From positions 62,001 through 126,000 of the IMG/VR virus record IMGVR_UViG_3300009104_001827: DNA of 64,000 nucleotides, one strand, 5' to 3'. This document shows positions 19,663 to 42,115 of the stretch, one piece after another. Positions within the stretch are counted from its first letter, which is position 1. Each line of letters starts with the position of its first letter. Below the pieces are notes generated by a model that worked only from the letters and a program-made list of their open reading frames with translations, did not search any database and was not told the origin of the DNA. A program made the translations under genes and the position numbers.

Positions 19663-21312
19663 CTACTTCCATTTACCATCTGCAATAAACGGGGCGAAGT
19701 CTGTAAGGAAGTCAGCTGCTACTGCTCCACGAGATCCCGCAACCATAAGTCCTCTAGCCGTATCCTCTGGACCTCCGACTTGACAGGAGAACGTAATGTC
19801 CACTGATTTATTGTCCCCAATTGAAGAACTGAAGGCTTCCCCTTCTAGTTGTGCTCCTCTGACATAAAATGCCATTGCTACGGGGCCGGTTCCATCTGGG
19901 GTAGGCTCTCTTAAGATAAAGTGGAGATCATGATTCTCATGATCAAATAGTTGGTCCGCTACATTGCCCGCCTTAAGGTCGGAGACAATCGCACTAACCG
20001 AGACAGAAACTGTAAGCGGAAAGTCGAGCGGTCTAGAATATGCATAAGGAGTTCCAAGTCTTTGGATGGGCGTTCTACCCATGGGAACATCAATGCTAAA
20101 GCTTTGTACATGACAGGCGCCTGATGTATGGTCCGTCGGAGGATCTTCTCCGGGGAGCGTATTCATAACTCCCGCTGCGCCCGCTGCCCCCAAGTGCATT
20201 TCAATGTCACCTGGTCGCAAGCATGACCATCCATCTGCTTGGCCTGAATGATCGTCTCCGTCTTCATCTGTACTGTCAGCCGCTGCTTCGTTCAAGACGC
20301 CGCTCACTGGTGTTGGTAAGGTAAAGGTTAGTCCTCCCTGCTCCCTATTCTCGTCACTGCCCTTGCTGGAACCATTAACGGGAGTTCCCCGCTCATTGTT
20401 CACCGCAGGCAGTGGAACATTGTGAAATCCGCTGTCAGACCTAAGGTTAAGGCCCTCAACGGTCACGGAAGCTGTTGGCATCCCGCCAACGGAAGCCTCA
20501 ATTCCGTAGTTGGTAACGTACCCATTGCCGAGCGCAATTGTTGAAACCTTAGAGGCTCCTCCGGGGTCGTCGTCCCCGTCTATGTTATCAAATGCTGAAT
20601 TTCCGATGGCATCCGTGCCCTGTGGAGTCGTAAGGATAAAGAAGTTTCTTCCCCCTTCGTTTTCCGAAGCTGAGTCGGTTTTAATAAAATTGGTGGCCGA
20701 CTTGTCTTCAAGCTTCGCCAATGTCGATACATTGAATCCAAGGAGCGCTTCGTTTGCGCCTGTAGAGAGGTAATAGGAAAAGTCTAAAGAAACAGTAGGG
20801 GGATCAATGGCAACTGAATCTATCCTACTGAGTTGGCCGAACTGGTTAACGTCTTGTCGGTTAATTGTGAAGCTATAATTTGCGCTTTGTACCCTTTGGA
20901 GTTGTCTGGCTCCCTTTCTGAAGTACCAATTGCCGTCATCGTGGAGATCTTCCAGTCCAATCAGCGGAGGCTTACTCGCATCGCTAGTGTGGTCTTCTGT
21001 CACTTCAAAATAGTATGTCATATCCTCGCCGCCGAGCTTCTCGTCCTGTGAGAGTATTGTCCCCTTGGTGTAAGTCTGACCTCCTGACCATACGGCTGGC
21101 GTCTTGTCTATTGGCTTGTTTACTAAAACAAGCTTGTTTGCTTCTGGGTTAGGTATTACGTTCTCATCGTTTGTCAATGGTACGCCCAACAATCCTACGC
21201 GTTCTCCGCTTTCATAAGACGCATTTAGCGCCGACGCATGATAGCCGGTAGCCAGGGGCTGCCCAACATATAATGCTTCACTCTGATAAATTACTCTGTT
21301 TCTAGTTGCCAT
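19663..21312 (-). CDS. Probable major tail tube protein (two tube-like repeats)
   Basis: Strong SD (AAAGGAG). Beta-rich, with an internal repeat (VQSANYSFTINRQDVNQFG..PPTVSLDFS / VQSFSIDVPMGRTPIQRLG..FPLTVSVSVS). It lies downstream of neck-like genes. Confidence 0.65.
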   Translation of the reverse strand: MATRNRVIYQSEALYVGQPLATGYHASALNASYESGERVGLLGVPLTNDENVIPNPEANKLVLVNKPIDKTPAVWSGGQTYTKGTILSQDEKLGGEDMTYYFEVTEDHTSDASKPPLIGLEDLHDDGNWYFRKGARQLQRVQSANYSFTINRQDVNQFGQLSRIDSVAIDPPTVSLDFSYYLSTGANEALLGFNVSTLAKLEDKSATNFIKTDSASENEGGRNFFILTTPQGTDAIGNSAFDNIDGDDDPGGASKVSTIALGNGYVTNYGIEASVGGMPTASVTVEGLNLRSDSGFHNVPLPAVNNERGTPVNGSSKGSDENREQGGLTFTLPTPVSGVLNEAAADSTDEDGDDHSGQADGWSCLRPGDIEMHLGAAGAAGVMNTLPGEDPPTDHTSGACHVQSFSIDVPMGRTPIQRLGTPYAYSRPLDFPLTVSVSVSAIVSDLKAGNVADQLFDHENHDLHFILREPTPDGTGPVAMAFYVRGAQLEGEAFSSSIGDNKSVDITFSCQVGGPEDTARGLMVAGSRGAVAADFLTDFAPFIADGKWK

Positions 21313-21374
21313 AGTTTGTCTCCTTTATTCTTGGATTCCTTTGTTATTACATTCTTTTTAAAAAAATGAGAACT

Positions 21375-22238
21375 TTAAATTCTTGGATATCTATATGTTA
21401 CCACTTCGAAGTCGATAAATCCTATAAAAGTGTTGGGGTCAATTTTCTTTGTAATTCTGTCGCTGAGCTTGGAAACATCTACCCTGTCGATGTAATGCAA
21501 CGCCGCCGGATTTGATGTAAGGCGTGCATCGGAAAGTGTTTTATAATTAAAATCTGGAGCGTCACCAAACTCGGTAACGGGGTAGTCCTCAAAGCTAAGC
21601 GCAGCGAAACACTCTTTATTGGAATCATTGAAAATGGATAATATGCCGTCTAGCTGATAAATGTTCTCTGCCATAATTACGCATCGTATGTCTGTCATTG
21701 TCTGGTCTTGCCCTCCAAAGCTGAATGGGTCGTTGAAATTGCGTGCATTATTAATAAAGATCGCGGGCGTCACGTGCGCGTACGGGGGGATGGGAATTTC
21801 CTCGGCCTTAAATCGACTATTAACTTCAAATTTTGATTCAATAATTAAATTTTCTTCTGTTTCATTTGTTACATATATATTGAAATCTTTTACAGAATAA
21901 TTCGCCGTTATGGTGGAGGTTGTTGCTGCTGTTGTTATTACTCTGCCGTTTTGGTGATCTATTATAAGTTGTGGATCGGCTCCTGAGCCGTCATTTCGAG
22001 ATACCGACGACCCGTCGATCATTACGCTGTCGGGAATCTGAGCCCCCGAAATACTTTCATCGTAGACCCATTGTTTGTAGGGGCTAGAGAAGCCGTTGAG
22101 CCCTGGCCCCAACCTTGAGTCTTCAAGATAGCTTAACGCTCCAGACTTGTTCTGATATGCTTCTCCTCTTTTTAATAAATAATTATCAAGCCAAAGGGTG
22201 AAGCTGGTTGTGATTTCGTGCTGGAATTGTGGTTTCAT
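21375..22238 (-). CDS. Putative tail completion/terminator protein
   Basis: Sits between neck-like genes and the tube gene. TPAIFI...PFSFGG...DIRCVIMAEN resembles terminator-type proteins. The call is mainly positional. Confidence 0.4.
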   Translation of the reverse strand: MKPQFQHEITTSFTLWLDNYLLKRGEAYQNKSGALSYLEDSRLGPGLNGFSSPYKQWVYDESISGAQIPDSVMIDGSSVSRNDGSGADPQLIIDHQNGRVITTAATTSTITANYSVKDFNIYVTNETEENLIIESKFEVNSRFKAEEIPIPPYAHVTPAIFINNARNFNDPFSFGGQDQTMTDIRCVIMAENIYQLDGILSIFNDSNKECFAALSFEDYPVTEFGDAPDFNYKTLSDARLTSNPAALHYIDRVDVSKLSDRITKKIDPNTFIGFIDFEVVTYRYPRI

Positions 22239-22819
22239 TAAAATCTAATACCTCTGCTTTGTAGTTTTTTCTTAAAGTTGTTTAATATAATAGATATATA
22301 CGAGGAGTTTCTAAACCTGCCGCCTACGTTGCCTTTTACTTGTATCCCTTCTCCTGACCTGCTTGACGCAGTATCGATATTCATGTATTGCCCCATCCCT
22401 GAAATGCCGTGCTCTATGCTCTTTAGCCAGCTCCTGCCGCGAGCCCATCTTAGGGGTGTTGCCCTGAAAAGCTGCGACCTTGTTGGTATTTCAGCTGAGT
22501 ATTGGCGAACGCCTCCTTTGAGATTTTCTTTGAAAAATTTAATCTTGCACCCTCGCTCCAGGACCTCTCTTAATTCCTCTGTGGGTCGATCTCCGTCTTC
22601 AAATCCCAGGAAACCAAAAAGGCTTCCCCTGCTTACTAGGCCTGCGTCTCCCTCGTTGTTAAGATCTCTAGTGATGGGGTGATTGTCGAATTCCTCGAGC
22701 ATCTCTGATTTTGCTCGCTCGAAAAAATCTTGAGCTTTTGCGTCCATCGCCCGAACGACCTTGCGGTCTTTGAGTAAGGCCACCTGTAGTGATTGCTTCA
22801 ATGCCCTGTCTCGAATCAT
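22238..22819 (-). CDS. Putative neck/tail completion protein
   Basis: Basic 193-aa ORF, translationally coupled to both neighbours. Positional inference. Confidence 0.35.
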   Translation of the reverse strand: MIRDRALKQSLQVALLKDRKVVRAMDAKAQDFFERAKSEMLEEFDNHPITRDLNNEGDAGLVSRGSLFGFLGFEDGDRPTEELREVLERGCKIKFFKENLKGGVRQYSAEIPTRSQLFRATPLRWARGRSWLKSIEHGISGMGQYMNIDTASSRSGEGIQVKGNVGGRFRNSSYISIILNNFKKKLQSRGIRF

Positions 22820-23277
22820 TGTGTTTCTACTGGTTTAAGATAGAGCGTATAAAAATCAACGTCAAACAATCCGTGCGGCCTTGGGTCGGAATCTACTAAA
22901 AACATTCTGCCGTCGAATTCAATGCGCTTTGCATCTCTGATGTAATCGTAATCTACCTTTTTTAATTTAATCCTCACCCTACTTCCGGAATCTACTCTAG
23001 AGATTTTTGTTGATGTCCCAAATTCACCAAAGTATTCTGTATCCCTGTTGTCATCGTAACGAATGCGAGCCTTGAAGACCTGCTTTTGCGGCACATTGGT
23101 AACGCTAGAAGTGCTCTCGCTCGTCTGGTTGTAGATATAATTATAATTGGGGTCAGTACTAATCACAACCTTCTGAGCTTCCTTATATACAACGATGTCC
23201 CTGGAGAACGTATCGTGCAGGTTGTTGAATTGGCTTGCTATTATTGATTTAGCTGCATCGGAAAGAAAACTTGACAT
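22816..23277 (-). CDS. Putative head closure / head-tail joining protein
   Basis: 153 aa and beta-rich. The C-terminal RIEFDGRMFLVDSDPRPHGLFDVDFYTLYLK resembles SPP1 gp16/FII-type stoppers. Confidence 0.45.
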   Translation of the reverse strand: MSSFLSDAAKSIIASQFNNLHDTFSRDIVVYKEAQKVVISTDPNYNYIYNQTSESTSSVTNVPQKQVFKARIRYDDNRDTEYFGEFGTSTKISRVDSGSRVRIKLKKVDYDYIRDAKRIEFDGRMFLVDSDPRPHGLFDVDFYTLYLKPVETQ

Positions 23278-23286
23278 ATATTATTC

Positions 23287-23307
23287 TACACTAAATAATA
23301 TTGTGTA
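23287..23307. promoter_or_regulatory. Divergent pair of GTGTA putative late promoters
   Basis: TACAC at 23287-23291 (9 nt to ATG 23277) and GTGTA at 23303-23307 (22 nt to ATG 23330). Confidence 0.6.
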
Positions 23308-23329
23308 TTGTTAAATAAGGAATAAGGTT

Positions 23330-23617
23330 ATGGAGGCAGAGGATATTTTTCGCAAACACTGCGAGCGGAATACGGTTACTCTTTTTAAGGGTTTCCTTGT
23401 TATGTTGGAAGACCTACAAAAGGAGCACGAAATTAATTTTGGCAAATTAAAAAGGAACCTTCCAAAGGAATACTCCCCGCTCATTGATCAAGCCAATTAT
23501 TTTGATCAAGAAAAGGTTCAGCACCTTCGAAAGCGCACCCTGGACATTGGCAATGAGGCCATTAGGAATATCGAGGGTGGGTTTGAGAATTTCACTATAG
23601 ATTTTGTCTTTAAGTAA
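23330..23617 (+). CDS. Hypothetical protein (95 aa)
   Basis: Clean ORF with SD-like AAGGAATAAGG and an upstream GTGTA motif. Confidence 0.7.
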   Translation: MEAEDIFRKHCERNTVTLFKGFLVMLEDLQKEHEINFGKLKRNLPKEYSPLIDQANYFDQEKVQHLRKRTLDIGNEAIRNIEGGFENFTIDFVFK

Positions 23618-23642
23618 CTATAATAAAGAAAGGAATAAGTAT

Positions 23643-24452
23643 ATGGCAACTGATGTTTTAGAAAAAGAGGATACCGACGCCCCCGTCAAAATGCGGGAGG
23701 TATATAGTTTTACGGTAGATAAGGTTGAGAAGGTTAAGGTCACTGAAACCGAGGAGCGAAAGAACGAAGACGGAACGACTGAAGAAGTTGAGGTCACCAA
23801 GGAGGTCGAGGAGCCCGTCCCTTATCGAGTAATTATTAAGCAGCCGAACCGTAGGGAAATGGAAGAAGCAGAGCTTGAATATAGTATCGAGATGAGTAGA
23901 TGTATTAAACAAGGAATTCTCACTAAGGCGATGTTGTCTAAAAAATATTCTGACAGCGGTGGGCTTATGGCTGAAGAGGATGCGTCTGCACTCACTAGGC
24001 TCTATATGAAATTCGGGGAAATCAGTAATGACCTTACGAGGTTAACCACTAAGGTTAAGAAAACCGATAAGGACAAGGAGAAAATTAAAAAATTATCCGG
24101 CAAACTCGGGGAGACCCGCAAGGATATAGTTGATATGGAAACCAATTACGCATCTTTATTCAACCACACAGCGGATTCACGCGCCCAAAATAAAGCCGTG
24201 ACCTGGTACCTCTTAAACCTGAGCTACCTCCGCAGGGATAACGAAGAGGATACCGAGCCCATTTTTAAGGGCGATACCTTTCAGGATAAAATCGATGAAT
24301 ACTACAGGCTTGAGGAAGAAGGTAGTGAGCTCTATGATATTATATCCTCAAGGCTCGCAACCTATATTAGTTTTTGGTACTACAGCGCCGGAGCCGTTAC
24401 CGACGAAGACTTTGAGACTCTACAAAAGGACATAGATGAAGGAAACGTCTAG
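23643..24452 (+). CDS. Putative tail assembly chaperone (acidic, coiled coil)
   Basis: ATG 23643 follows AAGGAATAAG. Helical protein two genes upstream of the TMP. Function is positional inference. Confidence 0.45.
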   Translation: MATDVLEKEDTDAPVKMREVYSFTVDKVEKVKVTETEERKNEDGTTEEVEVTKEVEEPVPYRVIIKQPNRREMEEAELEYSIEMSRCIKQGILTKAMLSKKYSDSGGLMAEEDASALTRLYMKFGEISNDLTRLTTKVKKTDKDKEKIKKLSGKLGETRKDIVDMETNYASLFNHTADSRAQNKAVTWYLLNLSYLRRDNEEDTEPIFKGDTFQDKIDEYYRLEEEGSELYDIISSRLATYISFWYYSAGAVTDEDFETLQKDIDEGNV

Positions 24453-25438
24453 TGTCCACCACCAATTACCGTAAGGCATTTAGGGATATTGTTCGAGGTT
24501 TTTCCACCACCGAACACAACGGAGCTTTGATATATATCAAGCACCTGACTCCCCACGACCAGGTGGAGCTCGAAGACATTACCGAGCTATATGAAAAAAT
24601 CGCCCAAGACCGAGGGCTCCCCACGGAGGACGAGATGTTAGAGATATTGTGTGAAGGGGGAGATTGGACAGAGAAAGACGAAGAGGAAGTTGAGCGCCAA
24701 GAGAGATTCATTAACACTATGGAGGAATCCAAGAAGAACCTAGTCCTTAAGTCTGCTCAGGATCAGCAGAATAAAATTATCGAAAGGGAACTCGACAAGC
24801 TTAATAAGAAGAAACAACAGCGACTGGATTTACTCGGCAATACTTGTGAAAAATACGCGGAACAAAGAACTCATGACTTCTACATCCTCCGCAGCTTTCA
24901 AAAAGATAAGGCCGGAGAGGTTCCTCTATATACTGAAGAAGAATATGATGAACTAGATCAAGCATATGTCTCATCTCTTGTTAATTTATATAATGATATT
25001 TTTAATTCTTTTACCGAGGAGTCTATACAGTATTTAGTATTAGAGGAGTTTTACCAACCTTACTTGGGCTTCTCTGATGACAGTATGCAGTTTTACGGTG
25101 TCCCGTTTTGCAAGCTAACATATAATCAAATAAGAATGATCGTGTATACCCGAATCTTTAAAAGTATATACGAAAATAATCAAAACATTCCAGAGAAAAT
25201 TAAAAAAGATCCAAAGGCTTTATTGGATTATGGTAGTATATCTGAAGAAGAGAAAGAAAAAATGAAGAGCAGGTTTGAGGACGCCGACGGGGCAACGCTG
25301 ATTGGGGCAACAGACGAGGATTATGAATACCTCGGCATGACTAAGCCCAACCAGGGTGTTAGCCTGCATGAGGAAGCAAAGAAAAAGGGCGGATCTCTAA
25401 GCATGCAAGACATGATGAAGCTTTCCGGGGCTGGCTAG
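24452..25438 (+). CDS. Putative second tail assembly chaperone
   Basis: GTG start overlaps the upstream TAG. Helical protein immediately upstream of the TMP. Confidence 0.45.
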   Translation: MSTTNYRKAFRDIVRGFSTTEHNGALIYIKHLTPHDQVELEDITELYEKIAQDRGLPTEDEMLEILCEGGDWTEKDEEEVERQERFINTMEESKKNLVLKSAQDQQNKIIERELDKLNKKKQQRLDLLGNTCEKYAEQRTHDFYILRSFQKDKAGEVPLYTEEEYDELDQAYVSSLVNLYNDIFNSFTEESIQYLVLEEFYQPYLGFSDDSMQFYGVPFCKLTYNQIRMIVYTRIFKSIYENNQNIPEKIKKDPKALLDYGSISEEEKEKMKSRFEDADGATLIGATDEDYEYLGMTKPNQGVSLHEEAKKKGGSLSMQDMMKLSGAG

Positions 25439-25475: not shown

Positions 25476-28400
25476 ATGAGCATTAATGTAAACGTCCACG
25501 CTAACACGGATCCTTTGGTCAGGGATGTTCACGCTGCCGTAGACAGAATTAACAGGTCGGGAAGACTTAAGATTCGAATTGACGATAAGGGGGTTACTCA
25601 GCCGCTGGGTAACATGAAGCGCGGCGCCGACGAATTTACTAAATCCCTTGAGGCTTCTAATGCTCGTGTTCTTGCCTTCGGGGCTTCCGTGGGGGTTATT
25701 AATGCTGTTGCCGGAGCGTTCAAGGGATTGGTTCAAGCTACTATGGAGGTGGAGAAAAACCTAACCGATATTAATGTCGTTATGGGGCTGACCACTGGCC
25801 AACTTGATAAATTCGGCGGAGGGTTAATGAAGGTCGCCGCCGAAACGGGAGCCGGATTCAGGGCTGCGTCGGAAGCTGCCACGGAATTTGCGAGGCAGGG
25901 TCTTTCTGTTAACGAAACCCTCAAGCGAACAAAGGACGCCCTTATCCTAACGAGACTGACCGGGATGAAGGCTGCGGATTCAGTGAAATCTTTGACTGCC
26001 GCGATGAATACGTTTAAGGGGGAAATAGCAGACTCAACAGCCCTGGTAAGTAAATTCGCCGCCGTAGATGTTAAGTTCGCGGTTAGCGCGGAAGACTTCG
26101 CCCAAGCAATAGCGCGAGCAGGGCAATCCGCCAGGAGCGCAGGGGTTGATATCAATCAGCTTATCGGATTGGTGACGGCAGCTCAAGAAAGAACCGCTCG
26201 CGGTGGCGCAGTTATCGGTAACGCCTTTAAGACAATCTTTACTAGGGTCCGGCGTAGTTCTACGCTGGCAGAGCTGGAGAATCTTGGTATTGCCGTCCGT
26301 GATCTGCAAGGCAAAACTTTACCTGCCATGAAAATCATGCAGAGCCTGGCCAATACATACGACACCCTAACGGACGCTCAAAGAGCCTACATCTCACAAA
26401 ACGTCGCAGGCGTATTCCAGATCAACATTTTAAAAGCCGCCTTGGCAGACTTGGGAAAAACAAACAGCGTAACCGCCCAAGCCACTGCGATAGCTGCAGG
26501 CGCAACAGATGAATCTAACAGAAAGAATGAGCAACTCAGGCAAACCATGTCTGCTCTTGCAACTGAAACGGGAGTGGCCATCCAGGAGCTCGCAAAAAAA
26601 ATAGGAGATATCGCTCTTGCTCCAGGCATAAATAAGGTTTTAGATGGAATCAAAGGTATGGCCGAAGGGCTAGGCGGAATACTTGGCGACGGGGAACAGG
26701 AAGGAAATAAATTCGCTCAGGGTCTCTTGAGGGGCGTGGGCAACATCTTGACTGGTCCGGGTTTGGTGATGTTCGCTGCTGTCGCAGGAAAACTATTTGT
26801 TAATGCCGTTAAATATGCCCAGCAAAGCTTGGGCAGTCTTCTGAATATTAATAAAACCGCTAATGCAAGACGAAACATTGAGCAAAGCTTAATGCAGGTT
26901 CTTACTCAAAATGCAGGGCTACAAAAGGAAATGCTGCGGACAGACATAAGCCGAGAACAGAAGGAGCGAACTATTCTCCAGCTCATTCAGCAGCAAACCC
27001 AAGAGGCTAGCCGACTTGCGGCCCTGACTAAGAGCATGGCTCCCGTCATGATGCGACAAGGTATCGGACCCGGCCTGTCCATGAGGAGTGGGGGACGTGG
27101 CGCGTCAGGTTTTATCCCGAATTACGCAGCCGCAGATGATGAAAAGGCTGAGGCTAGAAAGGGCGGATATGCCCCCGGAGCAGTACGCACAATGAGGATG
27201 CCCGGCGTCGGGAGCGTTGTATATAACACCGCTGAAAGGGTTAAGAAATTTCCAGGGCTGACGCAGCCCGCAATTATGCCTCCAGGAGGTAAGGCGAAAG
27301 ATAATTATACAAAGGAATTCTATGGCACTCACGGTTTTGACCCATACATGGCGGGAGGAGGGTATGTTCCGAATTTTGCAAAAATTGGTACATCTCAGGC
27401 AATAGAAATGATAAGGGGCGGGCGCAACCCTCAGGGGTGGAAATACAGAAAAGATTTGCCCGACGACATAAAAACGCTCGCTCAATACAACATGAAATCA
27501 AGTGCAATCGCTATTCCTGCCACGCAATACCAGCGCGGGCAAGCGGGTCAAATGCGAGCAGCCAAAGACAAGAAGGGAATTAAGGAGTTTGACGCCAGCC
27601 GTTTATTTACATTGCTAGCATTAAAAGGCGGCGGAAAGGCACACGCCTCATTATACCCCGGAGGAAAGCTTAAGGAAATTTACGGTAGAGCCGCGAACGC
27701 CGACGGAGTTCTGCCTAAGATAAAATTCAGTATCTCGGGCTTCAAGCGCGCGAATATTCCTTCTGCAGAGGATTCAGAAAAAGACAATTTAGAAATAATT
27801 CAAGAAGATTTGCTCAAATCAACCGTGCCGTATGCGGTTAACTTTTCCAACAAACTAAACCTTGGGGACGCCGACCCGACCACCCCCAAGCTCATGGAGG
27901 CGGCGTTAAAAAAGGGTGGGAGCGGCGCTCTTGGCGCGCTATCCGGTTTAGTCGGAGCCATATTCGAGGCTTCCATATCTACAAGGCTTCCAGATTCAGA
28001 CCCCGACGGGGCTCCTGGAAAATTCAAACATGCCGGTGGCAGTATTTCGGAGGTCGGCGGTGACTTCGACGTAAGGGATATAAAGAGCAACAGCATTATA
28101 TCCACGCTTTTTGACCCAGGCCCAATAGCGGATATTGGAGACTATAAGACTCAGGCAAATGACGAAACTAAGAAAAGCATGGCCAACAAAATTGCAAAGG
28201 AAATGATCTACCGCAGGCACCCTGACTTCGTTGGGGAGAAAAACCGGGATGGCGGGATATATTTCGGTAGTGATGGCAAGCCCCTTTACGGAAAACCCGA
28301 AGCCGGCCAAGGTACAGCCGTAAGTGGAAAGCTTAAAGACCTGTCGTCAATTAAGGGGGCCGGCTTTGTTCCCAACTTTGCATCACTTGAAAAATATTTA

Positions 28401-31400
28401 GCTCACCGAGGTAGGTATGGGGGCCTTGATATTACGAGCATGTCCGATTTCAATAAAGCGTCTCCGTCGAAGCAGGGGGAACTTCGAGGTCTCGCCGGCT
28501 GGCATGAGCCCTCCGAATGGAGCGTTCAGAATGGGGAGTACGGACAATGGGGCCAACCTGACTCATTCGAGGATTATATGGCTGACGAAGCAATGGCCGC
28601 AGTAGACATTGCTGAACACGTCATAACCGGAGACGACGGAGAATCCTTTGAGGGAGGCATGAAGACTCGGAACGTAACCTTTCAACCCGGCGGCGGGCCA
28701 GCGCAAATGCGAAAACATATCAGGGCGATCAGGAGCGCTGCAAAGAGCGGCAAGCCTTACCAAATTTTAAACACCGGCACGGTCGTTGGGCATAGGGTAC
28801 CTAGTATAATGGTCAAGGCTAAAGCGTTAATTGACCGAATGAGACAAAGGGAGGACATTCCTATAATGAAAGTAATGGGCACTCTTAACCCTAATTATCT
28901 AGAACAAGATGTTGCGGATATGAAGGGATCTGTTCCCCTGGGCTTCTCGAAGTGGGGCCAGCTACCAAAGGGAAGCAAGGGTACTCATTTATATAGAAAA
29001 GGAGATACAAAAAAACTTAATTCAAGCTTAAAAAAACTAGGTATCAAAAGGGACTCGGGAGGATTCTATAAGGATAAGCCCGTACCGATGTCGTCACTAT
29101 TTCCCATGGGTTTCGCTGGGGGCTTTGTTCCCAACTTTGCCGACCCATTAAGTGATGCCGTCGGGAGAGAAATGAGCGCCGGCGTTCCTGTTTCTAAAAT
29201 TAGAGTTGGGTCACATAGAAAATTAGTCGGGAGCTCCAACCCTGCTGGGCTCGGCGTCACCAATACAGATGACGAACCCAACGGATTGCGTGATGTACTT
29301 GGTGCTACTGGAATTGTGCCGAATTACTCGAAGCTCAGCGGGGTGGTGGAGTTCGTGGATCCGCAGAAAAAAGTAGACCGGCTTGGTAAGGAAGCTGAGG
29401 AGGCAGCTGAGGAGGTGTCAAAGTATAAAGATGAGGTCACAGAGGCAGCGAAGGCAAAGGAGGAAGGCGCCGCCGAAGAAAAAAAACTCAAAAAGGAAGT
29501 TACAAGATTAAGAAGGGAAGAGAAGGCGTACGCTAACGAGGTCGGCAAAAAGAAAAAGGGGTCTACTAGGCATCTTGCCGCAGAGAAAAAACTAACCCAA
29601 GCGTTGGAAGCGGTGAAGAAGCAAAAGCAAACGAACGCCAACGCTACCAAGAAAAATACTGATGCAACGGATGCGTTAACCAAAGCAGAAAAGAAGTCCG
29701 CTCAAGCCACAAAGAAAATCCAGAAGGCTCAAGCCTCTCAACAACGGAGAGGAATGCTGGGGATGACCGCAATGATGGGAGCCCAAATGGCAGTTGGACA
29801 GATGCAGGGCATGGAAGGCTTCGAGACGAGTAAGTCCATGCAGGGTATCGCGGGAGGAGTGGGCATGGCCTCCACGGGAGCCTCGATGGGTATGATGTTC
29901 GGCCCTTGGGGTACGGCAGTAGGAGCGTTGGCCGGAGGAGTCTATGGGGTGCTTGACGGATTCAATAAGGCTGAAGAGGCCGCTAGGAAGCTTGCCAAAG
30001 CTCAAGTTGTCGCACGAGAAGCCGCCGAAGCTGCCGAATTCTCACGAAAGTCCGGACTTGCTGCGGGGTTGCTCTCCCAGGAAAACATATCCTCCCTTTC
30101 GGATCGGTGGAAAGGTTCGGACACCCTGGGCGGATCAACCGAGAGGAAGTTTACTGATCCCGTTGTGTTCACGGAAAAATATTTTAAGGCCTGGAATGCC
30201 TTGGCTCTGGAGGGGGACACTGAGCTTAAGGCTAGAAATCTTGGCAGAAAAGGCGATGCCGCCCAGAATTGGAAAGATACGCGTGGCCAACGTCTATACG
30301 ATGATCTTGGCATTAAGGATGGCGGGTTTACCCCAATCACCCGTATTGGTCCGAAGAGGGGCGATATCAAGGGCGACGGCACGTTCGAGAGCAGGAAGCG
30401 TTTAGCAGGCAGCGACCAAATGGTCGTAGAGTTTACGGGTAATGAAGAATTCACTGACGACTCGGCGCCAACAGATTATAAAGAAGAAATGGGAGTCACC
30501 TTTGCTCAATTTCGAGCAATGAAAATGCCGGGCGGAGCCATAGACAGAGCCCCGGAAGAGCAAAGAATTTGGCAACGAATGCAACAGGACTCTGGCGGCT
30601 TCAGCGCTACCCAAATGAAAGATGTGCTGGGTGCTGACTGGAGGGGAGGCCCCAATGCGAATAGGCTAAGTATGATTGCTAGCCTTGGTGGGTCGCGGGT
30701 CGGTGCCAACCCAATGCTCGCGGAGCAATTGCATAAAGGAGCCGAATCAGGCGGAGGGGCGGGGCTGCTATATGAAGCCGCAAAAGAAGCGCTCAAAGGG
30801 GAAGGACAAAATACGGAAGGTGCGGTCAGGAAAAAATATCAGGACGCATTGGTCTCATGGATAGAAGCTTCTGTAGACCCTAGTTCTGCGCCAAAGGAAT
30901 ACGACACAACTTCTTGGATTAAAAGCGGTAAAAAAGGCGGTAAGGGTCAGGAGATTTCCCAGTCGGAATACGATGCGCTAGATGCTAAGGAGAAAGCGGG
31001 CGATACTTGGTCGAAGGTTGGTGGAAAGAAAACTCTTGGTTTCGCGGAGCTTGTTGCCATGGCGGGATCAGATGACACGTCACTCTCTCAACTAATGGAG
31101 CTGGCAAACCAAATGGAAACTGCCTCTATGCAGGGGGGCGTTGCGAAAATGACCGGCGACAAGCAAAGTGCATTTATAGCAAGAAAACAAGACGCCCACC
31201 ATCGCGTGGATGTGAATGTGATGTCAAAAACACAAGCTCTTGCTGATGCCACCCGAAAATACACCCAAAGAGTGGATAAGACTCGGGCTATATGGGACGG
31301 GCTCACCAGTGAAACCTCTAAAGTCTGGCGTGATTACAATATGGGAATGCGAAAAGCGGGCGATAAACATACCACAACAATACTAAAAGCGGAGTCCGAC

Positions 31401-34400
31401 AGAAAGAAGGGGCTACTCTCTATCGCTCTAGAGGACAGGGGTGAGCAGCGCACCAACCTCATGGGGGCATTAGGTATTCAGTCTACCGGGGATACAGCTC
31501 TTGAGGATCAGGATCTTTTGCGCGCAATGGAGGCTCTTAGCGCTCAAGAACTGCACGAAATTTTAAATAAAATAATCACGAACGACTCGAAAAGAGTTGG
31601 AGTGATGAGAGATCTTGAGAATAAGCAAATACTAATAACGAAGGGCGCTCATAACTCCCTCGACGCGTCGGAGAAGCAGCTCGAGAATAGTAAAGAGATC
31701 AATCTTGTGCTCCAGACACGGCTTCAGTTAAAAACCAGAATGAAACGTTTCGACGAAAACACCGCCCTGAAGGAGGAGGTTGAATTATTGAAGCAGGCTG
31801 TCGCGCTCACCCAAAAAATGGGGGAAGGCAATATTGCGCTGGCACGCATGCAGGGGGGTACCGCCTCTCAGAGATATGGGGTCGGCCAAAAAAATAGAAA
31901 ACTCCAATACGAAAACTCAGTAGAGTCTAGTAAGGTTCGGCACGGCAAGGACCTGCTGAGCACTATAAAAAGCCAGCCCGAATTAAGGGGCATTGTGGAT
32001 AGCGATGTTGGCTTTGACATCAACGAATATCAAAAGCTTGAATCCTCCCAGGCTAAGGCCGACTACCTTATGGGCTTTAAGGATAAATTGAAAAAGAAAA
32101 TGATCCAAGATGAGGCTGACAGCTACGCTGCCGATCGGGCACCCCTCTCCGGAAAAGCGGCAAACCTTGAAGGGGCCCTGAAACTACTCCCGTACCATAC
32201 GGGCGGCCAAGTAACCATGCAAGCGGATCCTAGAACCGGCAAGGGTCTCGGCCAACTGGCGGGCACGCGCACCCCGGGGCTCCCGGGTATGGCGGGCGTT
32301 AACACTTTAATGGGGAGGGCAAGCTGGAAAGAGCAGATGTGGGAGGGCGGCCTTCCCGGGCAAGGTGGAAAAATAATAACCACAACACAAAAGGATGCCA
32401 TGGATAAAATAGCAAGAGACAGAAGAAGGGATTGGGATGACTCTGCTCAAGAATATACAGAAACTGTCGCTCCGGATGGCACCAAGGGGGCTCACCGAGG
32501 TGGGTGGACCTATAAGGGGAGAATGGCTCCGCCGGGGAAGTCGGGGCACCCCGATCGAGGCGACTTTAATATGTGGGAAAAGGGTTTCACTGACGAAGAG
32601 TCAAGGCTTTTTAAGGAGGCGAGAATTCTCCCCTCCAAACGTGGGGGGGATGTAGCTAAAATGGCGGCGTCCTACAAGGCGCAAGACCATGTTCTGGATA
32701 TAGACGCAACGAGAAAGAACTTGGAGAACGAGCGGAAGATAAACGCAGAAAAGCTTAAAAATTTAGACACCACGAATAAGCAGGTGGCGGCTCATAGTAA
32801 TGTAGATGAAGGACTGACGCAGGTCATCGAGAAATTAAGGCTCAAAGGCGATATGCACAAAGAGGTGTTGGCTAAAATGGAGGCCGAATATGAGATCGCT
32901 AAAAAACTAGCCGAAATAGAACACAAGGAAAAGCGCGGCGAGGGCGCCTTCGGTAGGGGAATGAATCGAGGGATGAACCAAATACAGGACAGGGTTGAAA
33001 CCTTTAGTCATACAATGGGAACGCAAATTCCGGAAATGTTTTCTAACGGCATGTCCAGCGCAATGATGAACGCCATCCGCAACGGAGGAAAACTTAAGGA
33101 CGTATTACGTGACGCAGCTCTAAGTTTCCTTGATACTTTTAATCAAAAAATGATGGGCCATTTCGCCGACCAAGCCACCATGGCCTTGTTTGGCTCCGGA
33201 GAACAGAGGACAAGAAAGGGGTACGCCAAAGGCGGCCTAGTAGGATTCAATGATGGCGGGCTCGCCATGGTTAGTAATCAGGAGTACCGCATGCGTCCGG
33301 AGGCCGTAAAAAAATACGGCGTCGGCATGATGGACGCCGTAAACTCAGGCCACTTCCAGCGTAGGGCTGGGGGAGGCCCAAGCTGGGCCGCAGGGCTAGG
33401 TGGTATAGCAGGTGGATTCTTGGCAAGCAAACTATTCGGCAAGAAGGAAGAAGAGAAGCATGTGGTCCGCGAAAAAGACCGCTTCGAAACTGATGGCGCA
33501 TGGAAACGCCAGAACATGTCTGCCCATTACATGCAAAATAATGAGCGCGTACAGACACACGTCGGCGAGCTGAGGATGAAAGATCAGGAGAACACTCAAA
33601 AATTTATAGAAAAAGCAGAAAAGAAAGCTCAAATGGGACGACAGTTATTCACTGCTGTCGCCAGTCTTGGGGCTCAAAAACTGGGAGCCAAGCTGGAGTC
33701 GAGCGGCGCATTCGGTAAGGCCGACATGGCGATGGGCTTTGGCAAGGATGTTAAAATGCCCGACGGGACGCTAGCTAAGGTATCTCCTGATGGAAGCATG
33801 TTTAAGATGGGGAGTGATGCGGGGGCAAGGCTTGCGGCGGAATCGAAATTGCAAGGCCCCTCGCTGCCCGGACAAAACATACTAGGCTTCGAGCAGAGCT
33901 CCGGATTTTTAGGCGGAAAAAAGGATCACGGGTACATGCATCGATCTGGCCTTGAGAAATACGCGGGATTGCAGGACTCCATAATCGGACCAAAGATGCA
34001 AGACTGGCAACATGATGATGGCAGCTTTAACTTTTCAAGCAGAGAAAAGCGAGGCAGACTCTCAACATGGGCTAATTCTCCCTGGAAAAAAGGCAGCGTT
34101 GGCGAAAAGGCGACGGAGGCCACAAAAAAACTCAAGGAGTTCATAAAGGATACGGGTAGAAAAATAAACCCCCTTAGGAAAGCAACCGGCGGCAAGATCG
34201 TAGGGCAATCCGGCATCGACCAAATTCCCACCATGCTTTCAGAGGGCGAGTACGTAATAAGGGCCGACGCCGCAAGAAAAATGGGCGTGCCCGCCTTGGA
34301 TAAAATTAACGCCGGCAGATTCAACAAGGGAGGCATCGTTACCAATGCCAGCAGTGACCCCGGCGGAAGCTTGGGTGGCGCAAGCACAAACAATGTCTCT

Positions 34401-34574
34401 ATAACCGTCAACGTCGATAAGTCCGGCGGCGAATCCAGCGGTGGTGACGACGAGAAGTCTGGAGATGGCGGAGAAGATAAAATGGATAAGTTCTCCTCAA
34501 GAATCAAGGATCAAGTCATCACTGTAATTAAGGAGGAGAGCCGACCTGGAGGGCTGTTAGACGACGGCGCGTAA
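25476..34574 (+). CDS. Tape measure protein (3032 aa) with inserted globular domains
   Basis: N-terminal TP901-like TMP core (AATEFARQGLSVNETLKRTKDALILTRLTG...TARGGAVIGNAFKTIFTR), coiled coils and Gly/Met hydrophobic segments. The C-terminus has KATGG..GIDQIPTMLSEGEYVIRADAARKMG..LDKIN. Confidence 0.92.
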   Translation: MSINVNVHANTDPLVRDVHAAVDRINRSGRLKIRIDDKGVTQPLGNMKRGADEFTKSLEASNARVLAFGASVGVINAVAGAFKGLVQATMEVEKNLTDINVVMGLTTGQLDKFGGGLMKVAAETGAGFRAASEAATEFARQGLSVNETLKRTKDALILTRLTGMKAADSVKSLTAAMNTFKGEIADSTALVSKFAAVDVKFAVSAEDFAQAIARAGQSARSAGVDINQLIGLVTAAQERTARGGAVIGNAFKTIFTRVRRSSTLAELENLGIAVRDLQGKTLPAMKIMQSLANTYDTLTDAQRAYISQNVAGVFQINILKAALADLGKTNSVTAQATAIAAGATDESNRKNEQLRQTMSALATETGVAIQELAKKIGDIALAPGINKVLDGIKGMAEGLGGILGDGEQEGNKFAQGLLRGVGNILTGPGLVMFAAVAGKLFVNAVKYAQQSLGSLLNINKTANARRNIEQSLMQVLTQNAGLQKEMLRTDISREQKERTILQLIQQQTQEASRLAALTKSMAPVMMRQGIGPGLSMRSGGRGASGFIPNYAAADDEKAEARKGGYAPGAVRTMRMPGVGSVVYNTAERVKKFPGLTQPAIMPPGGKAKDNYTKEFYGTHGFDPYMAGGGYVPNFAKIGTSQAIEMIRGGRNPQGWKYRKDLPDDIKTLAQYNMKSSAIAIPATQYQRGQAGQMRAAKDKKGIKEFDASRLFTLLALKGGGKAHASLYPGGKLKEIYGRAANADGVLPKIKFSISGFKRANIPSAEDSEKDNLEIIQEDLLKSTVPYAVNFSNKLNLGDADPTTPKLMEAALKKGGSGALGALSGLVGAIFEASISTRLPDSDPDGAPGKFKHAGGSISEVGGDFDVRDIKSNSIISTLFDPGPIADIGDYKTQANDETKKSMANKIAKEMIYRRHPDFVGEKNRDGGIYFGSDGKPLYGKPEAGQGTAVSGKLKDLSSIKGAGFVPNFASLEKYLAHRGRYGGLDITSMSDFNKASPSKQGELRGLAGWHEPSEWSVQNGEYGQWGQPDSFEDYMADEAMAAVDIAEHVITGDDGESFEGGMKTRNVTFQPGGGPAQMRKHIRAIRSAAKSGKPYQILNTGTVVGHRVPSIMVKAKALIDRMRQREDIPIMKVMGTLNPNYLEQDVADMKGSVPLGFSKWGQLPKGSKGTHLYRKGDTKKLNSSLKKLGIKRDSGGFYKDKPVPMSSLFPMGFAGGFVPNFADPLSDAVGREMSAGVPVSKIRVGSHRKLVGSSNPAGLGVTNTDDEPNGLRDVLGATGIVPNYSKLSGVVEFVDPQKKVDRLGKEAEEAAEEVSKYKDEVTEAAKAKEEGAAEEKKLKKEVTRLRREEKAYANEVGKKKKGSTRHLAAEKKLTQALEAVKKQKQTNANATKKNTDATDALTKAEKKSAQATKKIQKAQASQQRRGMLGMTAMMGAQMAVGQMQGMEGFETSKSMQGIAGGVGMASTGASMGMMFGPWGTAVGALAGGVYGVLDGFNKAEEAARKLAKAQVVAREAAEAAEFSRKSGLAAGLLSQENISSLSDRWKGSDTLGGSTERKFTDPVVFTEKYFKAWNALALEGDTELKARNLGRKGDAAQNWKDTRGQRLYDDLGIKDGGFTPITRIGPKRGDIKGDGTFESRKRLAGSDQMVVEFTGNEEFTDDSAPTDYKEEMGVTFAQFRAMKMPGGAIDRAPEEQRIWQRMQQDSGGFSATQMKDVLGADWRGGPNANRLSMIASLGGSRVGANPMLAEQLHKGAESGGGAGLLYEAAKEALKGEGQNTEGAVRKKYQDALVSWIEASVDPSSAPKEYDTTSWIKSGKKGGKGQEISQSEYDALDAKEKAGDTWSKVGGKKTLGFAELVAMAGSDDTSLSQLMELANQMETASMQGGVAKMTGDKQSAFIARKQDAHHRVDVNVMSKTQALADATRKYTQRVDKTRAIWDGLTSETSKVWRDYNMGMRKAGDKHTTTILKAESDRKKGLLSIALEDRGEQRTNLMGALGIQSTGDTALEDQDLLRAMEALSAQELHEILNKIITNDSKRVGVMRDLENKQILITKGAHNSLDASEKQLENSKEINLVLQTRLQLKTRMKRFDENTALKEEVELLKQAVALTQKMGEGNIALARMQGGTASQRYGVGQKNRKLQYENSVESSKVRHGKDLLSTIKSQPELRGIVDSDVGFDINEYQKLESSQAKADYLMGFKDKLKKKMIQDEADSYAADRAPLSGKAANLEGALKLLPYHTGGQVTMQADPRTGKGLGQLAGTRTPGLPGMAGVNTLMGRASWKEQMWEGGLPGQGGKIITTTQKDAMDKIARDRRRDWDDSAQEYTETVAPDGTKGAHRGGWTYKGRMAPPGKSGHPDRGDFNMWEKGFTDEESRLFKEARILPSKRGGDVAKMAASYKAQDHVLDIDATRKNLENERKINAEKLKNLDTTNKQVAAHSNVDEGLTQVIEKLRLKGDMHKEVLAKMEAEYEIAKKLAEIEHKEKRGEGAFGRGMNRGMNQIQDRVETFSHTMGTQIPEMFSNGMSSAMMNAIRNGGKLKDVLRDAALSFLDTFNQKMMGHFADQATMALFGSGEQRTRKGYAKGGLVGFNDGGLAMVSNQEYRMRPEAVKKYGVGMMDAVNSGHFQRRAGGGPSWAAGLGGIAGGFLASKLFGKKEEEKHVVREKDRFETDGAWKRQNMSAHYMQNNERVQTHVGELRMKDQENTQKFIEKAEKKAQMGRQLFTAVASLGAQKLGAKLESSGAFGKADMAMGFGKDVKMPDGTLAKVSPDGSMFKMGSDAGARLAAESKLQGPSLPGQNILGFEQSSGFLGGKKDHGYMHRSGLEKYAGLQDSIIGPKMQDWQHDDGSFNFSSREKRGRLSTWANSPWKKGSVGEKATEATKKLKEFIKDTGRKINPLRKATGGKIVGQSGIDQIPTMLSEGEYVIRADAARKMGVPALDKINAGRFNKGGIVTNASSDPGGSLGGASTNNVSITVNVDKSGGESSGGDDEKSGDGGEDKMDKFSSRIKDQVITVIKEESRPGGLLDDGA
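28362..29140 (+). repeat. 20-bp exact direct repeat GGCTTTGTTCCCAACTTTGC flanking an in-frame TMP insert
   Basis: Copies at 28362-28381 and 29121-29140, 759 bp apart. Confidence 0.9.
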
Positions 34575-35898: not shown

Positions 35899-36910
35899 GT
35901 TTACAAATTTCAACAGGTGCTTGATTGAACTCGGCGACCAACAAATTTATGCAACCTCTGCCTCATTGACTAGCGCCACATCACTAGCGAGAGACACCCG
36001 CCTGAATGGATTCAGCGAAGATCTTGCTGGCGCAACGGTGAACGACCCAAATCTAGTTCCCACTGGCCCACTGAAGGGCTCTCTGTCTTTTGAGTTTGTT
36101 ATTGCAGAACAACACTTCAATCCAATTAAATCTATTTTTGATATAAGTAAATCAATGAGTGATGGTTTTATTCCTATTGGTCGGATTGGTTCATATAGAT
36201 TTTGGAATGCAGCTATAACTAGTTTTTCATTTACCATGGAGCCATTTCAATTGGTGAAGGCTAGTGCTGAGTATGATATATTTGGTACAATATTTGAAGT
36301 CGGCGACAAGAACCTCCCTGACCCGCCATATATTAACCCTGCAGAAAGCTTAAAAGGTTTCGGAGAGGTTACCGCAAGCGGGATCAACCTCCAAGACGAA
36401 AACGAAAGTTTTGACTTGAGGATGCTCAAGGCCGAATACTCAGCTTCAGTCAATAGAAACATAAACTATACAATCAGAATGAACGAACAGCCCGGTAGTA
36501 AACTATACTCTGGGGGAGTGCTGCCATACAGGGCTGCCCTTAATGAGATAGATATTAATTGTAATGTAAAGGCGAATAAAATCATAAACTACATCAATCA
36601 CAAGGGCGTAATCCAAATGAGGAGCGGCGGAACTTTTCCTGAAGAGGTTGCTGTGCAGTTAAATTTGTATGGAGCATTTAAGGAGAACGTATATACGAAG
36701 ATCTCTGACTCCTCTGAAAAAATCGACGAGAAGGCATACCTCGATCTTCCTGATGGCGGTGGTGGAAAAGATCTGTACTCTGGGCCAGAAAGGGAGTCAA
36801 TGCATATAGCCTCGTTTGGCTGCTCGGGAAAGGTTACCAGTCAGGCGTTGAACGCCCAAGAGGGAGGCTATCTTAGTGGAGGGTTCTCTGTAAGGCAGGT
36901 GGTAAAATAA
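35891..36910 (+). CDS. Second tube-like tail tip protein
   Basis: GTG 35891 overlaps the upstream stop (GTGAGTGA). GPLKGSLSFEF...NAAITSFSFTMEPFQLVKASAEYDIFG resembles tube-fold strands. Confidence 0.45.
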   Translation: MSEFTNFNRCLIELGDQQIYATSASLTSATSLARDTRLNGFSEDLAGATVNDPNLVPTGPLKGSLSFEFVIAEQHFNPIKSIFDISKSMSDGFIPIGRIGSYRFWNAAITSFSFTMEPFQLVKASAEYDIFGTIFEVGDKNLPDPPYINPAESLKGFGEVTASGINLQDENESFDLRMLKAEYSASVNRNINYTIRMNEQPGSKLYSGGVLPYRAALNEIDINCNVKANKIINYINHKGVIQMRSGGTFPEEVAVQLNLYGAFKENVYTKISDSSEKIDEKAYLDLPDGGGGKDLYSGPERESMHIASFGCSGKVTSQALNAQEGGYLSGGFSVRQVVK

Positions 36911-39900: not shown

Positions 39901-40728
39901 ACAAACACAGAAAGCGTCGATGGCGCCATCTTCGAAAAAACAGAAATAGATACCCTACATAACGTGAACTTAATGGAGTCCCTGCTGGGAGCCTTGGATG
40001 GACAAGGTCTTTTGGACATCGGGATTGTAAACTTTAATGTTTCTGGAGTTATATTTTCCGAATCTACTAGCCTTCCGGCGATAAATTCTGGGAACGGTTA
40101 TTTGCCTGGTATGGATATAAGGATAAATCTTACTAATACCGCCAGAATTATAGGTAGGGGCGGCAAAGGTGGAACCGGAATGGTTTCAGAGGGGAAAATA
40201 TTTCAAGGGGACGGGTCTTACGATTCTATGTCAGACTTTAGGCCTCCGTCGTCAGGCGAAGATGGGGGCGATGCTATAGAAATTCAAGAACAAAACCCTA
40301 ATGTAAAATTTACAATTAAATGGACCGACGAAGCAAAGGTCTTTGCTGGAGGCGGCGGCGGAGGGGGAGGTGGCGCCGACCTTGATGCGGATGCCGAGTG
40401 GCCTGGTAGCTCTAAATATAAAATAAACTTCGCTGGGAGCGGTGGCGGCGGCGCAGGCATGGGCTTGGCCGGATATACCTTGGCTAGCCGTGGAGCGTTG
40501 ACTAGTGGAGGAGACGGCGGGGACGCCGTCAATAATAACTCCCGCTTGACCCTTATGTCTGGTGGCAACGGTGGGGGTTCGGGGGAGGATGGGGACGACA
40601 GCTCCGCCCCAAGGTTTTTCGCGAGTGGAGGAAAGGCTGGTAAGGCCATATTATACTATGGGCATACTGTTGGAACGTCTCTAATTCTCGACGGCAATAC
40701 CCCAGGTAATACAAAAGGACAGATATAG
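36910..40728 (+). CDS. Enlarged distal tail (lambda gpM/Dit-like) protein with two gpM-like domains, CBM-like modules and a Gly-rich C-terminus
   Basis: Duplicated motif YGDGY..PRGINSL..FNLKFTNRTSREANAILHFIE / NNVNLLSFSVTFANRSEKEAYAILHFLE..FLFIPPAPY..FICQQW. It precedes the L gene. Confidence 0.75.
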   Translation: MSDRYKGFWSPNSSYGAGDIVTYYPSSGYSGDPAFYKLKSGLSTGPVRNNLGYNACPLKNFKWPVLSSVGRDLKLSEDQNFDPTKGDQLDQTISEILSETSDWTQYKYYKINVWDGPNGKSGSLEINSVYWEIHTPTAGNPNAADTSTQTFSATGMTTVSVGTHNAPEDVDVTFDEVKDSEEGGELESDNYYISNVQNYKGYWSAGQSYKKFDIVRHRDSNKFYYARKDITSPSASSDVTGLTFHIRPPVPSLTENHVGNLEFVSHSGAKTGFRDAGFESGQSIQIAGDPNTYSISMLTEKIMVLAMYQFPAERALKQLVEGDLLDSADDQELTISIKTSDLDDENWSSNSFFFDADYGSSISFKGYNAQYEYGDGYKVVKPRGINSLSVDFNLKFTNRTSREANAILHFIENNLGQHEVQQEKYTLEYDQGIDGFNMDGDSLFFPYNNTENLTRKFYCFDFNHTIEGEDVHTVDARIFNNNTSILHRNDYLYVNKPEVYDAEQTYYKHDIVYAPGSDAYYYYQGEENARGDPPTGLYGVSINKDKWTREFYWKPSSSFNVNHSPSIAELSSKASAYKQYFPKNKNNVNLLSFSVTFANRSEKEAYAILHFLESHLAYKSFLFIPPAPYNRKRRFICQQWDHTYTFRDSHTITAKFEQYSLGQNTPLDDDEMDNLTPTVENRSARLALVNPVELRSSSLGVFVLKNQIEIKNTGETEASDIVASVSGDFTMSSLAFNRDDGAYLSAVDGISRKTNTANYDNSEGGAFLYEESGSAKSQDNLGRIGTLDFVAGKLTNRAAAGVAHISEDFLNPNKDPTLKPGESAFAEIYYTTGAAEKGEVLGNLTVTYKSLDTDKTSKYEITATVAQDHIVPETIDVAIEGTPEADIYKKSYSIDRYSEFDFISEENVLQTIQHSAILEDSIMAEPQDLSEVTNMLSQNGLEGKLALGIVYDSEWKYLSTSVAVGSSLGGNLPTGTGGDILVLVVESDKKTYTFGKMTNTESVDGAIFEKTEIDTLHNVNLMESLLGALDGQGLLDIGIVNFNVSGVIFSESTSLPAINSGNGYLPGMDIRINLTNTARIIGRGGKGGTGMVSEGKIFQGDGSYDSMSDFRPPSSGEDGGDAIEIQEQNPNVKFTIKWTDEAKVFAGGGGGGGGGADLDADAEWPGSSKYKINFAGSGGGGAGMGLAGYTLASRGALTSGGDGGDAVNNNSRLTLMSGGNGGGSGEDGDDSSAPRFFASGGKAGKAILYYGHTVGTSLILDGNTPGNTKGQI

Positions 40729-40729
40729 C

Positions 40730-42113: not shown

Positions 42114-42115
42114 GG

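Follow-up and report, generated by a model that had tools for sequence, protein, structure and literature searches.

The gene considered here encodes a giant tape measure protein (TMP) whose middle part is divided by a repeated short peptide, termed the joint, and it lies in a 64,000-nucleotide stretch of an uncultivated virus genome (the window; bases 62001-126000 of the 211,117-bp IMG/VR record IMGVR_UViG_3300009104_001827, rated complete by CheckV, 43% G+C). Proteins of this class sit in the lumen of the tail tube, and their length sets the length of the tail. The TMP gene is a single unbroken open reading frame (ORF) on the forward strand (25476-34574, 3032 amino acids). It contains a PhageMin_Tail domain (PF10145; 25839-26408, forward strand; residues 122-311) that scores 87.4 bits in Pfam against a gathering cut-off of 33.2 (E = 1.5e-24), and several TMP families of the PHROG collection match the N-terminal part of the ORF, the best with E = 8e-49. 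Downstream, at 36910-47065 on the same strand, lie lambda-type tail tip genes: gpM-like (PF05939), gpL (PF05100), a gpK-like JAB gene (PF14464; 41766-42113) and gpJ-like (PF13550), in the same order as in relatives. A domain score above the cut-off and a position in the tail module are the marks of the PF10145/TP901 TMP family. Together with the PHROG matches and the tail tip genes downstream, they identify the ORF, by homology, as the TMP of a marine phage of approximately 211 kb with a lambda-type (siphovirus-like, non-contractile-style) tail tip.

The joint and the modules it bounds

A sequence-only reading of the window had pointed to five copies of the peptide G-[FYI]-[IV]-P-N-[FY] within this gene, and all five were confirmed at positions 27108, 27360, 28362, 29121 and 29310, with start-to-start spacings of 84, 334, 253 and 63 residues. 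They are referred to here as m1 (GFIPNYA, 27108-27128; residues 545-551), m2 (GYVPNFA, 27360-27380), m3 (GFVPNFA, 28362-28382), m4 (GFVPNFA, 29121-29141) and m5 (GIVPNYS, 29310-29330), all on the forward strand. The direct repeat of 20 bp, GGCTTTGTTCCCAACTTTGC, that the same reading had placed at 28362 and 29121 is indeed exact, its first copy lying in m3 and its second in m4. Two independent GFVPNF-coding stretches would agree in all six codons with a probability of only ~0.003-0.005 under the local codon usage, and m1, m2 and m5 are coded by codons differing from those of the m3/m4 pair. A degenerate DNA pattern of the motif has 4 matches against 0.02 expected, and the glycine-led peptide is confined to the TMP gene when all 211 kb of the genome are translated in six frames.

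Homologues were collected by a protein search with residues 530-1300, which returned 578 proteins; the comparisons below use the 120 listed of these 578. All 120 are giant proteins of 1700-3400 residues from marine metagenomes, several of them on contigs of ~200 kb, and nearly all carry PF10145. In these proteins, the joint has a fuller, nine-residue consensus, A-x-G-[HFY]-[IV]-P-N-[FY]-A, and occurs at fixed places, namely on both sides of a first small module (A) and on both sides of a second one (D). The Gly, Pro and Asn of the joint are invariant in 117-120 of the 120 homologues at each of these four canonical sites; the m1 site, for instance, is kept in 118 of the 120, often as GHIPNF. 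Many homologues also have an aromatic residue at position -2 (Ar-x-Ar-I-P-N-Ar). The codons of the motif vary between sites while the peptide is kept across hundreds of relatives, which argues that selection acts on the peptide. Beyond this set, a scan of IMG/VR with one codon-degenerate version of a 20-mer coding for GYIPNFA found at least 120 contigs carrying it. Among these matches, 113 fall in ORFs of at least 500 residues (91 of which contain module D), and 107 of 120 ORFs have two or more motifs. Judged from these sequences, the joint characterises a large superfamily of TMPs from uncultivated phages. No cultured relative was found: neither the region nor modules A and D by themselves had a blastn or tblastn match in 50,697 phage records.

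Following an N-terminal domain of 540 residues, the joints set off four modules, all on the forward strand: A (27129-27359, 78 residues), B (27381-28361, ~330 residues), C (28383-29120, 247 residues) and D (29142-29309, 57 residues). The post-D part of the TMP occupies 29331-32848. Modules were defined with hidden Markov models (HMMs), because degenerate motifs fuse adjacent modules and single-linkage clustering of the segments consequently merged everything. AlphaFold models were made for B (from 104 sequences) and for residues 539-1287 (from 102 sequences); in these, all five joints fall in low-confidence linkers between the modules, with a mean predicted local distance difference test score (pLDDT) of about 40-50.

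Modules A and D are universal, since the HMM of each matches 120 of the 120 homologues. Module A, which is 75-78 residues long in the homologues, is modelled with low to moderate confidence (pLDDT 55-67), and D is predicted to be a small alpha/beta domain of helix-strand-strand-helix topology (pLDDT 83-87). The resemblance between these two short segments, which had been noted from the sequence, was rejected as kinship: profile-profile comparison with hhalign gave a probability of 0.1, and the two share only the residues directly after the motif (A-[DN]-P) plus a loose pattern. Module B is present in all listed homologues, between A and D, and forms one fast-evolving family, with the B regions of 117 of the 120 in a single BLAST component (E < 1e-10, at least 60% coverage). 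Its conserved core of ~165 residues (746-912; nt 27711-28211) has invariant G827, E831, D865, K891 and K905. Module C is unrelated to B by BLAST and has, among the 120, just one full counterpart, in P0003 (65% identity), and a partial one in P0118. The sequence-only reading had described B and C as two long globular domains. This holds for B, whose core is modelled as a confident alpha/beta fold (pLDDT 85-97), but not for C, which lies mostly below pLDDT 50 and in which only the C-terminal ~150 residues form a recurrent conserved domain.

The place between B and D behaves as a slot. Approximately 29 of 119 homologues hold an extra module there, each trailed by its own copy of the motif, and these extra modules belong to at least five unrelated families besides C: the commonest type has 87-100 residues, others have 198, 244 and 135 residues, and further types occur in P0118 and P0008. 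The 198-residue and 244-residue modules (P0002:972-1169, P0007:946-1143, P0112:942-1185 and P0008:1567-1810) share the stretch W-x-x-L-L-x-A-F-P-Q-[ML]-K-x-R-[MI]-x-x-G-M-[TV]-T-S-G and may be distant relatives. An exhaustive HMMER search with C found its C-terminal domain in 19 representative clusters, mostly TMPs of 3000-4800 residues. These distant C-bearing TMPs, of up to 4831 residues, carry 6-14 copies of the motif along their length. Their C-like domains often follow one another in tandem, and the motif again stands on both sides of D-like and A-like modules.

The term cargo cassettes, under which the sequence-only reading had placed all of the segments, fits C and the other accessory modules, which are optional. 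It does not fit A, B and D: with A and D in all 120 homologues and B a single family present throughout, these are probably essential core parts whose alleles are exchanged. One homologous TMP that seemed to be split at m1 (P0083; locus L010, 1366-9169) was discarded as a natural split. At this locus, the TMP and several neighbouring tail-module ORFs are broken into short overlapping or abutting ORFs, and the splitting of the neighbours suggests frameshift errors of a long-read assembly.

Exchange of modules at the joint

The nearest relative of the window TMP (P0001) changes from module to module. Its N-terminus (99% identity), module A (97%), module D (91%) and C-terminus (85%) are closest to P0005; the B core is closest to P0002 (72%, as against only 40% for P0005), C to P0003 (65%, as given above), and the 500 residues after D to P0006 (93%, as against 35% for P0005). 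In the protein alignment of P0001 with P0005, identity drops from ~99% to ~30% exactly after m2, recovers at m4 and falls anew after m5. The same pattern is seen in DNA. P0005 is encoded on the 207.7-kb contig L005, which shares 94-97% identity with the window over ~10 kb on either side, but its blastn block ends at 27385, a few bases after m2. Nothing aligns between 27385 and 29120, where a 207-bp island spanning m4 to m5 (29120-29326) begins that is 95.7% identical; beyond m5 the identity stops again. Against the P0006 locus (L008), the alignment likewise ends at 27385 and starts again at 29115, with 81% identity on the left and 93% on the right. Module C is missing from both of these relatives. 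Base-level alignments place the switch of identity inside the motif, so that m2 is the left junction of the exchanged stretch, m4 its right junction and m5 a further one. The sequence-only reading had taken the motif for a possible recombination junction and had expected inter-motif content to vary while the flanks stay conserved. Both are borne out by these comparisons with two close relatives, at both the protein and the DNA level.

The part of the TMP that follows D is replaced relative to L005. Over the longer stretch 29327-34011, L005 gives no match or patches of 69-85%, meaning that this half of its TMP is replaced or strongly diverged, and the same stretch of the window is 93% identical to L008. 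The TMP is in this sense a hypervariable island in an otherwise conserved genome.

Exchange is not limited to the window. The TMPs P0002 and P0007 have a 198-residue accessory module that is 96% identical, with N-termini that are 74% and B cores that are 35% identical. Across 1417 protein pairs, which are not independent of one another, 67% of 6365 abrupt changes in identity fall within 3 residues of a motif, where 6% would be expected.

Such patterns could in principle arise with no exchange at all, either because slowly evolving A and D stand beside a fast B or because the contig is an assembly chimera. Family-wide, A and D are indeed far more conserved than B. However, the flanks in question are 95-96% identical, and yet no similarity in DNA can be detected over B, with a sudden transition that takes no more than a few bases. 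Outside the exchanged stretch the synonymous sites are nearly the same, and inside it they are saturated; therefore, unequal rates cannot explain the difference and the stretches are replacements. As for an assembly chimera, four sequencing runs, all from one marine study, yielded contigs of identical sequence over 26600-30600, so that the arrangement is not a one-off assembly artefact. Given these data and the change of nearest relative from module to module, an origin without exchange is extremely improbable.

We therefore favour a reading in which the TMP is a string of modules that are bounded by conserved joints and exchanged at them, and in which the joint also has a job at the level of the protein; we put the probability of this reading at roughly 0.7. 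According to this model, the modules that follow the N-terminal domain, each bounded by the nine-residue joint, would be exchanged as units through homologous or microhomology recombination. The crossover would resolve inside the joint, since no other stretch is conserved between modules that diverge so fast. When an extra module is inserted, the joint would be duplicated, which would explain the exact 20-bp repeat around C; such a repeat is what a crossover between the joints of two differently built TMPs would be expected to leave behind. The window TMP would then be a composite, with the N-terminus, A and D of P0005 type, B of P0002 type, C of P0003 type and the post-D part of P0006 type. 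Recombination at the joint would be a consequence, possibly an exploited one, of the conservation of the joint, and selection on the joint peptide would in turn imply a protein-level job common to all modules.

Several points weigh against this model. The picture of a folded module does not extend to C, which is poorly modelled. The breakpoint statistic partly reflects the different rates of conserved A and D and variable B, and not exchange. The block replaced after m5 has its right end (~32849-34011) at no motif, so recombination is not confined to the joints. No deletion form lacking the 759-bp unit between m3 and m4, and no alternative joint, was found in the contigs of the four runs, although contigs miss rare variants. 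Lastly, the protein-level role is one that we infer from the conservation of the peptide.

Candidate functions of the joint and the modules

If the joint does have a protein-level job, the likeliest one is that of a flexible site for a single shared partner, either for processing cleavage or for a chaperone or docking contact. The partner would be met either while the tail is assembled or as the TMP passes through the host envelope on ejection. Three more specific roles can be weighed against the features of the joint.

In the first, the TMP would be a polyprotein and the joint a proteolytic or autocatalytic cleavage site (e.g., at or near the invariant Asn), from which the modules would be released into the host along with the DNA. 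Short invariant joints in predicted flexible linkers follow every module, the unrelated accessory ones included, as in viral polyproteins. There are also precedents for processing, as lambda gpH is cleaved to gpH* in a Gly-rich region by a protease that, like the exact site, is unknown, and T5 pb2 is cleaved as well (PMC12617516). In lambda gpH, a pair of [FY]-A-T-G-G-[FY]-x-G elements (residues 733 and 778), which resemble the first half of the joint, flanks a 45-residue element directly after the Gly-rich stretch. On the other hand, the motif is missing from every other long ORF of the genome and is therefore not a general site of a head maturation protease, and unrelated modules stand on either side of the joints, so that autocatalysis in cis by an adjacent domain is unlikely. 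B and C have no free-standing versions. Intein-type features are also lacking. Inteins have Hint-domain blocks, a penultimate His before a terminal Asn, and Cys, Ser or Thr at position +1. The Asn of the joint has Pro on its N-terminal side and Phe or Tyr on its C-terminal side, and Pfam gave 0 Hint matches. Taking both sides together, the polyprotein idea is a serious possibility, albeit one with the odds against it.

Alternatively, the joint may be a passive structural hinge or packing element in the tail tube, which would for instance set the register of the chains without any trans-acting partner, with recombination as a by-product. Its position in linkers and its invariant Gly and Pro, which are typical of turns, would suit a hinge. 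Moreover, its first half is like a generic A-x-G-G-x-[IV] element that is found elsewhere in this TMP (residues 2583, 2902 and 2949) and in lambda gpH. What a hinge does not account for is that the Asn and both aromatic residues are invariant over deep divergence and are kept after every accessory module, which exceeds the usual needs of a hinge. We consider this role unlikely, too.

The third role is that of a short linear motif through which the ejected, unfolded TMP would recruit a SurA- or FkpA-type chaperone or prolyl isomerase from the periplasm of the host. Such docking might help the modules to refold, or might keep the chain extended while a trans-envelope channel forms. The [HFY]-I-P-N-aromatic core agrees in four to five residues with the peptide WEYIPNV, whose Kd for the P1 domain of SurA is 1-14 uM (PMC7195389), and the aromatic residue at -2 in many homologues adds to the likeness. 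The presence of several copies, in predicted flexible linkers, also speaks for docking. HK97 injection has furthermore been tied, via its TMP, to a periplasmic chaperone, as PMC12617516 states with reference to Cumby 2015. Nevertheless, the likeness spans only five residues, the reference is a phage-display peptide selected against SurA of E. coli, and the joints of the window itself have no aromatic residue at -2. Chaperone recruitment therefore seems an improbable reading, and its proposed effects on refolding or channel formation equally so.

With respect to the modules, the sequence-only reading had proposed effectors injected with the DNA. This could not be upheld, as no module matches a Pfam, PHROG or PDB family or a known fold, and no free-standing homologues turned up. 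Pfam and PHROG searches with each module and with the accessory modules of relatives gave nothing, as did Pfam with all 104 members of B, a PDB sequence search with the region, and PDB sequence and profile searches with B. In five other giant TMPs of the family, Pfam found the N-terminal PF10145 and no further domain. The whole modular region had no credible fold match in BFVD, and feature searches of the ESM Atlas with C and B returned only unnamed viral clusters (0.65-0.73). Free-standing homologues of B were searched for and none was found; those of C are all TMP-like giants or fragments of such. The sole PDB match of D, a designed pentatricopeptide repeat protein, was rejected as spurious, as it has no significant stretch. 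No peptidoglycan-hydrolase domain (lysozyme, transglycosylase or peptidase) was matched by any module in Pfam, PHROG or PDB searches, and no toxin or enzyme domain was found in the modules of the window or in the five other family members.

One specific activity deserves mention, namely that B might be an injected nuclease effector of the PD-(D/E)xK type. Its invariant residues E831, D865, [DE]889-x-K891 and K905 follow the order and spacing of the E...D...(D/E)-x-K signature, and they lie on a helix-strand-strand-strand-helix-strand stretch of the model. In a search of the ESM Atlas by fold, which gave no credible match for B, one weak row was a cluster of Mrr_cat restriction endonucleases, with a template modelling score (TM) of 0.21-0.22. 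The other searches gave no restriction-endonuclease-like fold or profile: Foldseek of B against PDB and AFDB clusters returned nothing at E < 0.7, the best hit of the VIA wide fold search (Z score 4.7) covered helices only, and neither Pfam nor the PDB profile search lent support. A nuclease role for B is accordingly very improbable. The modules are, tentatively, best described as TMP-borne domains without a recognised activity.

Surrounding genes, related systems and significance

The wider tail region has several features of its own. Tail tip proteins of this phage are much enlarged: the gpM-like protein (36910-40728, forward strand) has 1272 residues compared with 109 in lambda, with PF05939 at residues 550-658 only, and an ORF of 3810 residues (47068-58500, forward strand) lies behind the gpJ-like gene. 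Divergent from the tail module, the reverse strand at 436-23277 carries very large ORFs (934, 995, 1439, 1606 and 549 residues) along with small ones. The small ORFs beside the TMP gene (19663-25438) had 0 PHROG matches, and three of them run against Pfam gave one weak DUF5356; in these searches, none of the ORFs beside the TMP could be assigned as a tail tube gene or a chaperone gene. An ORF of 587 residues (17893-19656, forward strand) has a C-terminal extension of ~105 residues (~19333-19646) that is missing from the otherwise 97% identical gene of L005. It terminates in LLPNF directly before the stop codon; since neither the Gly nor the surroundings of the TMP joint are there, this is probably a coincidence.

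Within the TMP, downstream of the modular region, hydrophobic stretches rich in Gly, Met and Ala and of glycine-zipper type (29748-29963, residues 1425-1496; 33375-33440, residues 2634-2655) are candidate membrane-inserting segments; the homologue P0037 has a precomputed match to PF13488, a Gly-zipper family. Two C-terminal elements (33219-33356 and 34179-34334; residues 2583-2627 and 2902-2953) consist of A-x-G-G-x-[IV]-x-G, followed by G/Q-E-Y-[VR] and ...[IV]-N-[AS]-G, and resemble FATGGFTG ... GEFVF ... YATGGYVG of lambda gpH (residues 733-785). This element is widespread in TMPs, and the P-N-[FY] joint looks in its first half like a variant of it.

The protein shares with TMPs of the TP901-1/lambda type the N-terminal PhageMin_Tail domain and a place upstream of gpM-, gpL-, gpK- and gpJ-like genes, and with lambda gpH the C-terminal A-x-G-G-x-[IV] ... 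G-E-[YF]-V elements. In contrast, lambda gpH has 853 residues compared with 3032 here, and it has neither the 740-residue non-helical modular insert nor the P-N-[FY] joints. With regard to processing, Gly/Ala-rich residues and small flanked elements (before the joints, and as A and D, respectively) recur in this TMP; cleavage is established in lambda, however, whereas the joints are known from sequence. Other TMPs have embedded enzymes, such as the peptidoglycan-hydrolase motif of TM4, the C-terminal peptidase of T5 pb2 and the muramidase of phiIPLA35 (PMC12617516). These also carry globular, non-ruler domains that are presumably delivered to the envelope. Unlike them, the TMP described here has no hydrolase match, and its several modules are bounded by joints and exchanged between phages.

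Short motifs that serve as crossover points have parallels elsewhere. In the distal tail fibre genes of T-even phages, recombination reportedly occurs at conserved 'His boxes', as Tetart et al. are said to have described in 1998. These, too, are short peptide-coding motifs between variable segments, but there the genes encode adhesins that determine host range, and here the modules of a TMP have no known receptor-binding role. Polymorphic toxins have demarcation motifs, VENN in CdiA and PxxxxDPxGL in Rhs, the latter also being a cleavage site. As in these toxins, the joint is a short conserved motif that bounds exchangeable cassettes and acts as a recombination boundary between them and a constant part. 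It differs in that there is no toxin-like domain, immunity gene or orphan cassette array (the next gene downstream of the TMP is a conserved tail gene), in that the variable modules are internal, and in that most modules are core parts. Among phage proteins generally, TMPs are over-represented among those with sequence mosaicism, although that survey could confirm no genuine recent TMP mosaic (Smug et al. 2023; PMC10684548). The present case, by comparison, is a recent exchange between genomes of ~95% identity with junctions placed at the level of single bases. In the literature searched, neither the motif in TMPs nor a TMP with an array of exchangeable modules and a repeated, family-wide joint was found.

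TMPs are among the least understood of the large phage proteins. The P-N-[FY] joint is a simple marker that can be searched for and that shows, in hundreds of giant TMPs of marine virome origin, where modules begin and end; it also provides a rule by which modular TMPs can be annotated and engineered. It makes several questions testable, including whether and where the TMP is processed, how non-helical domains pass through the tube, and whether the content that is injected first varies between phages. In the strongest version, which we regard as quite unlikely, the TMP would be a polyprotein and the joint its dedicated signal for cleavage or docking, by which a phage-specific set of shuffled modules is released or presented in the envelope or cytoplasm of the host before the DNA arrives. 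If this were true, these phages would have a programmable protein-delivery array built into the ruler of their tails.

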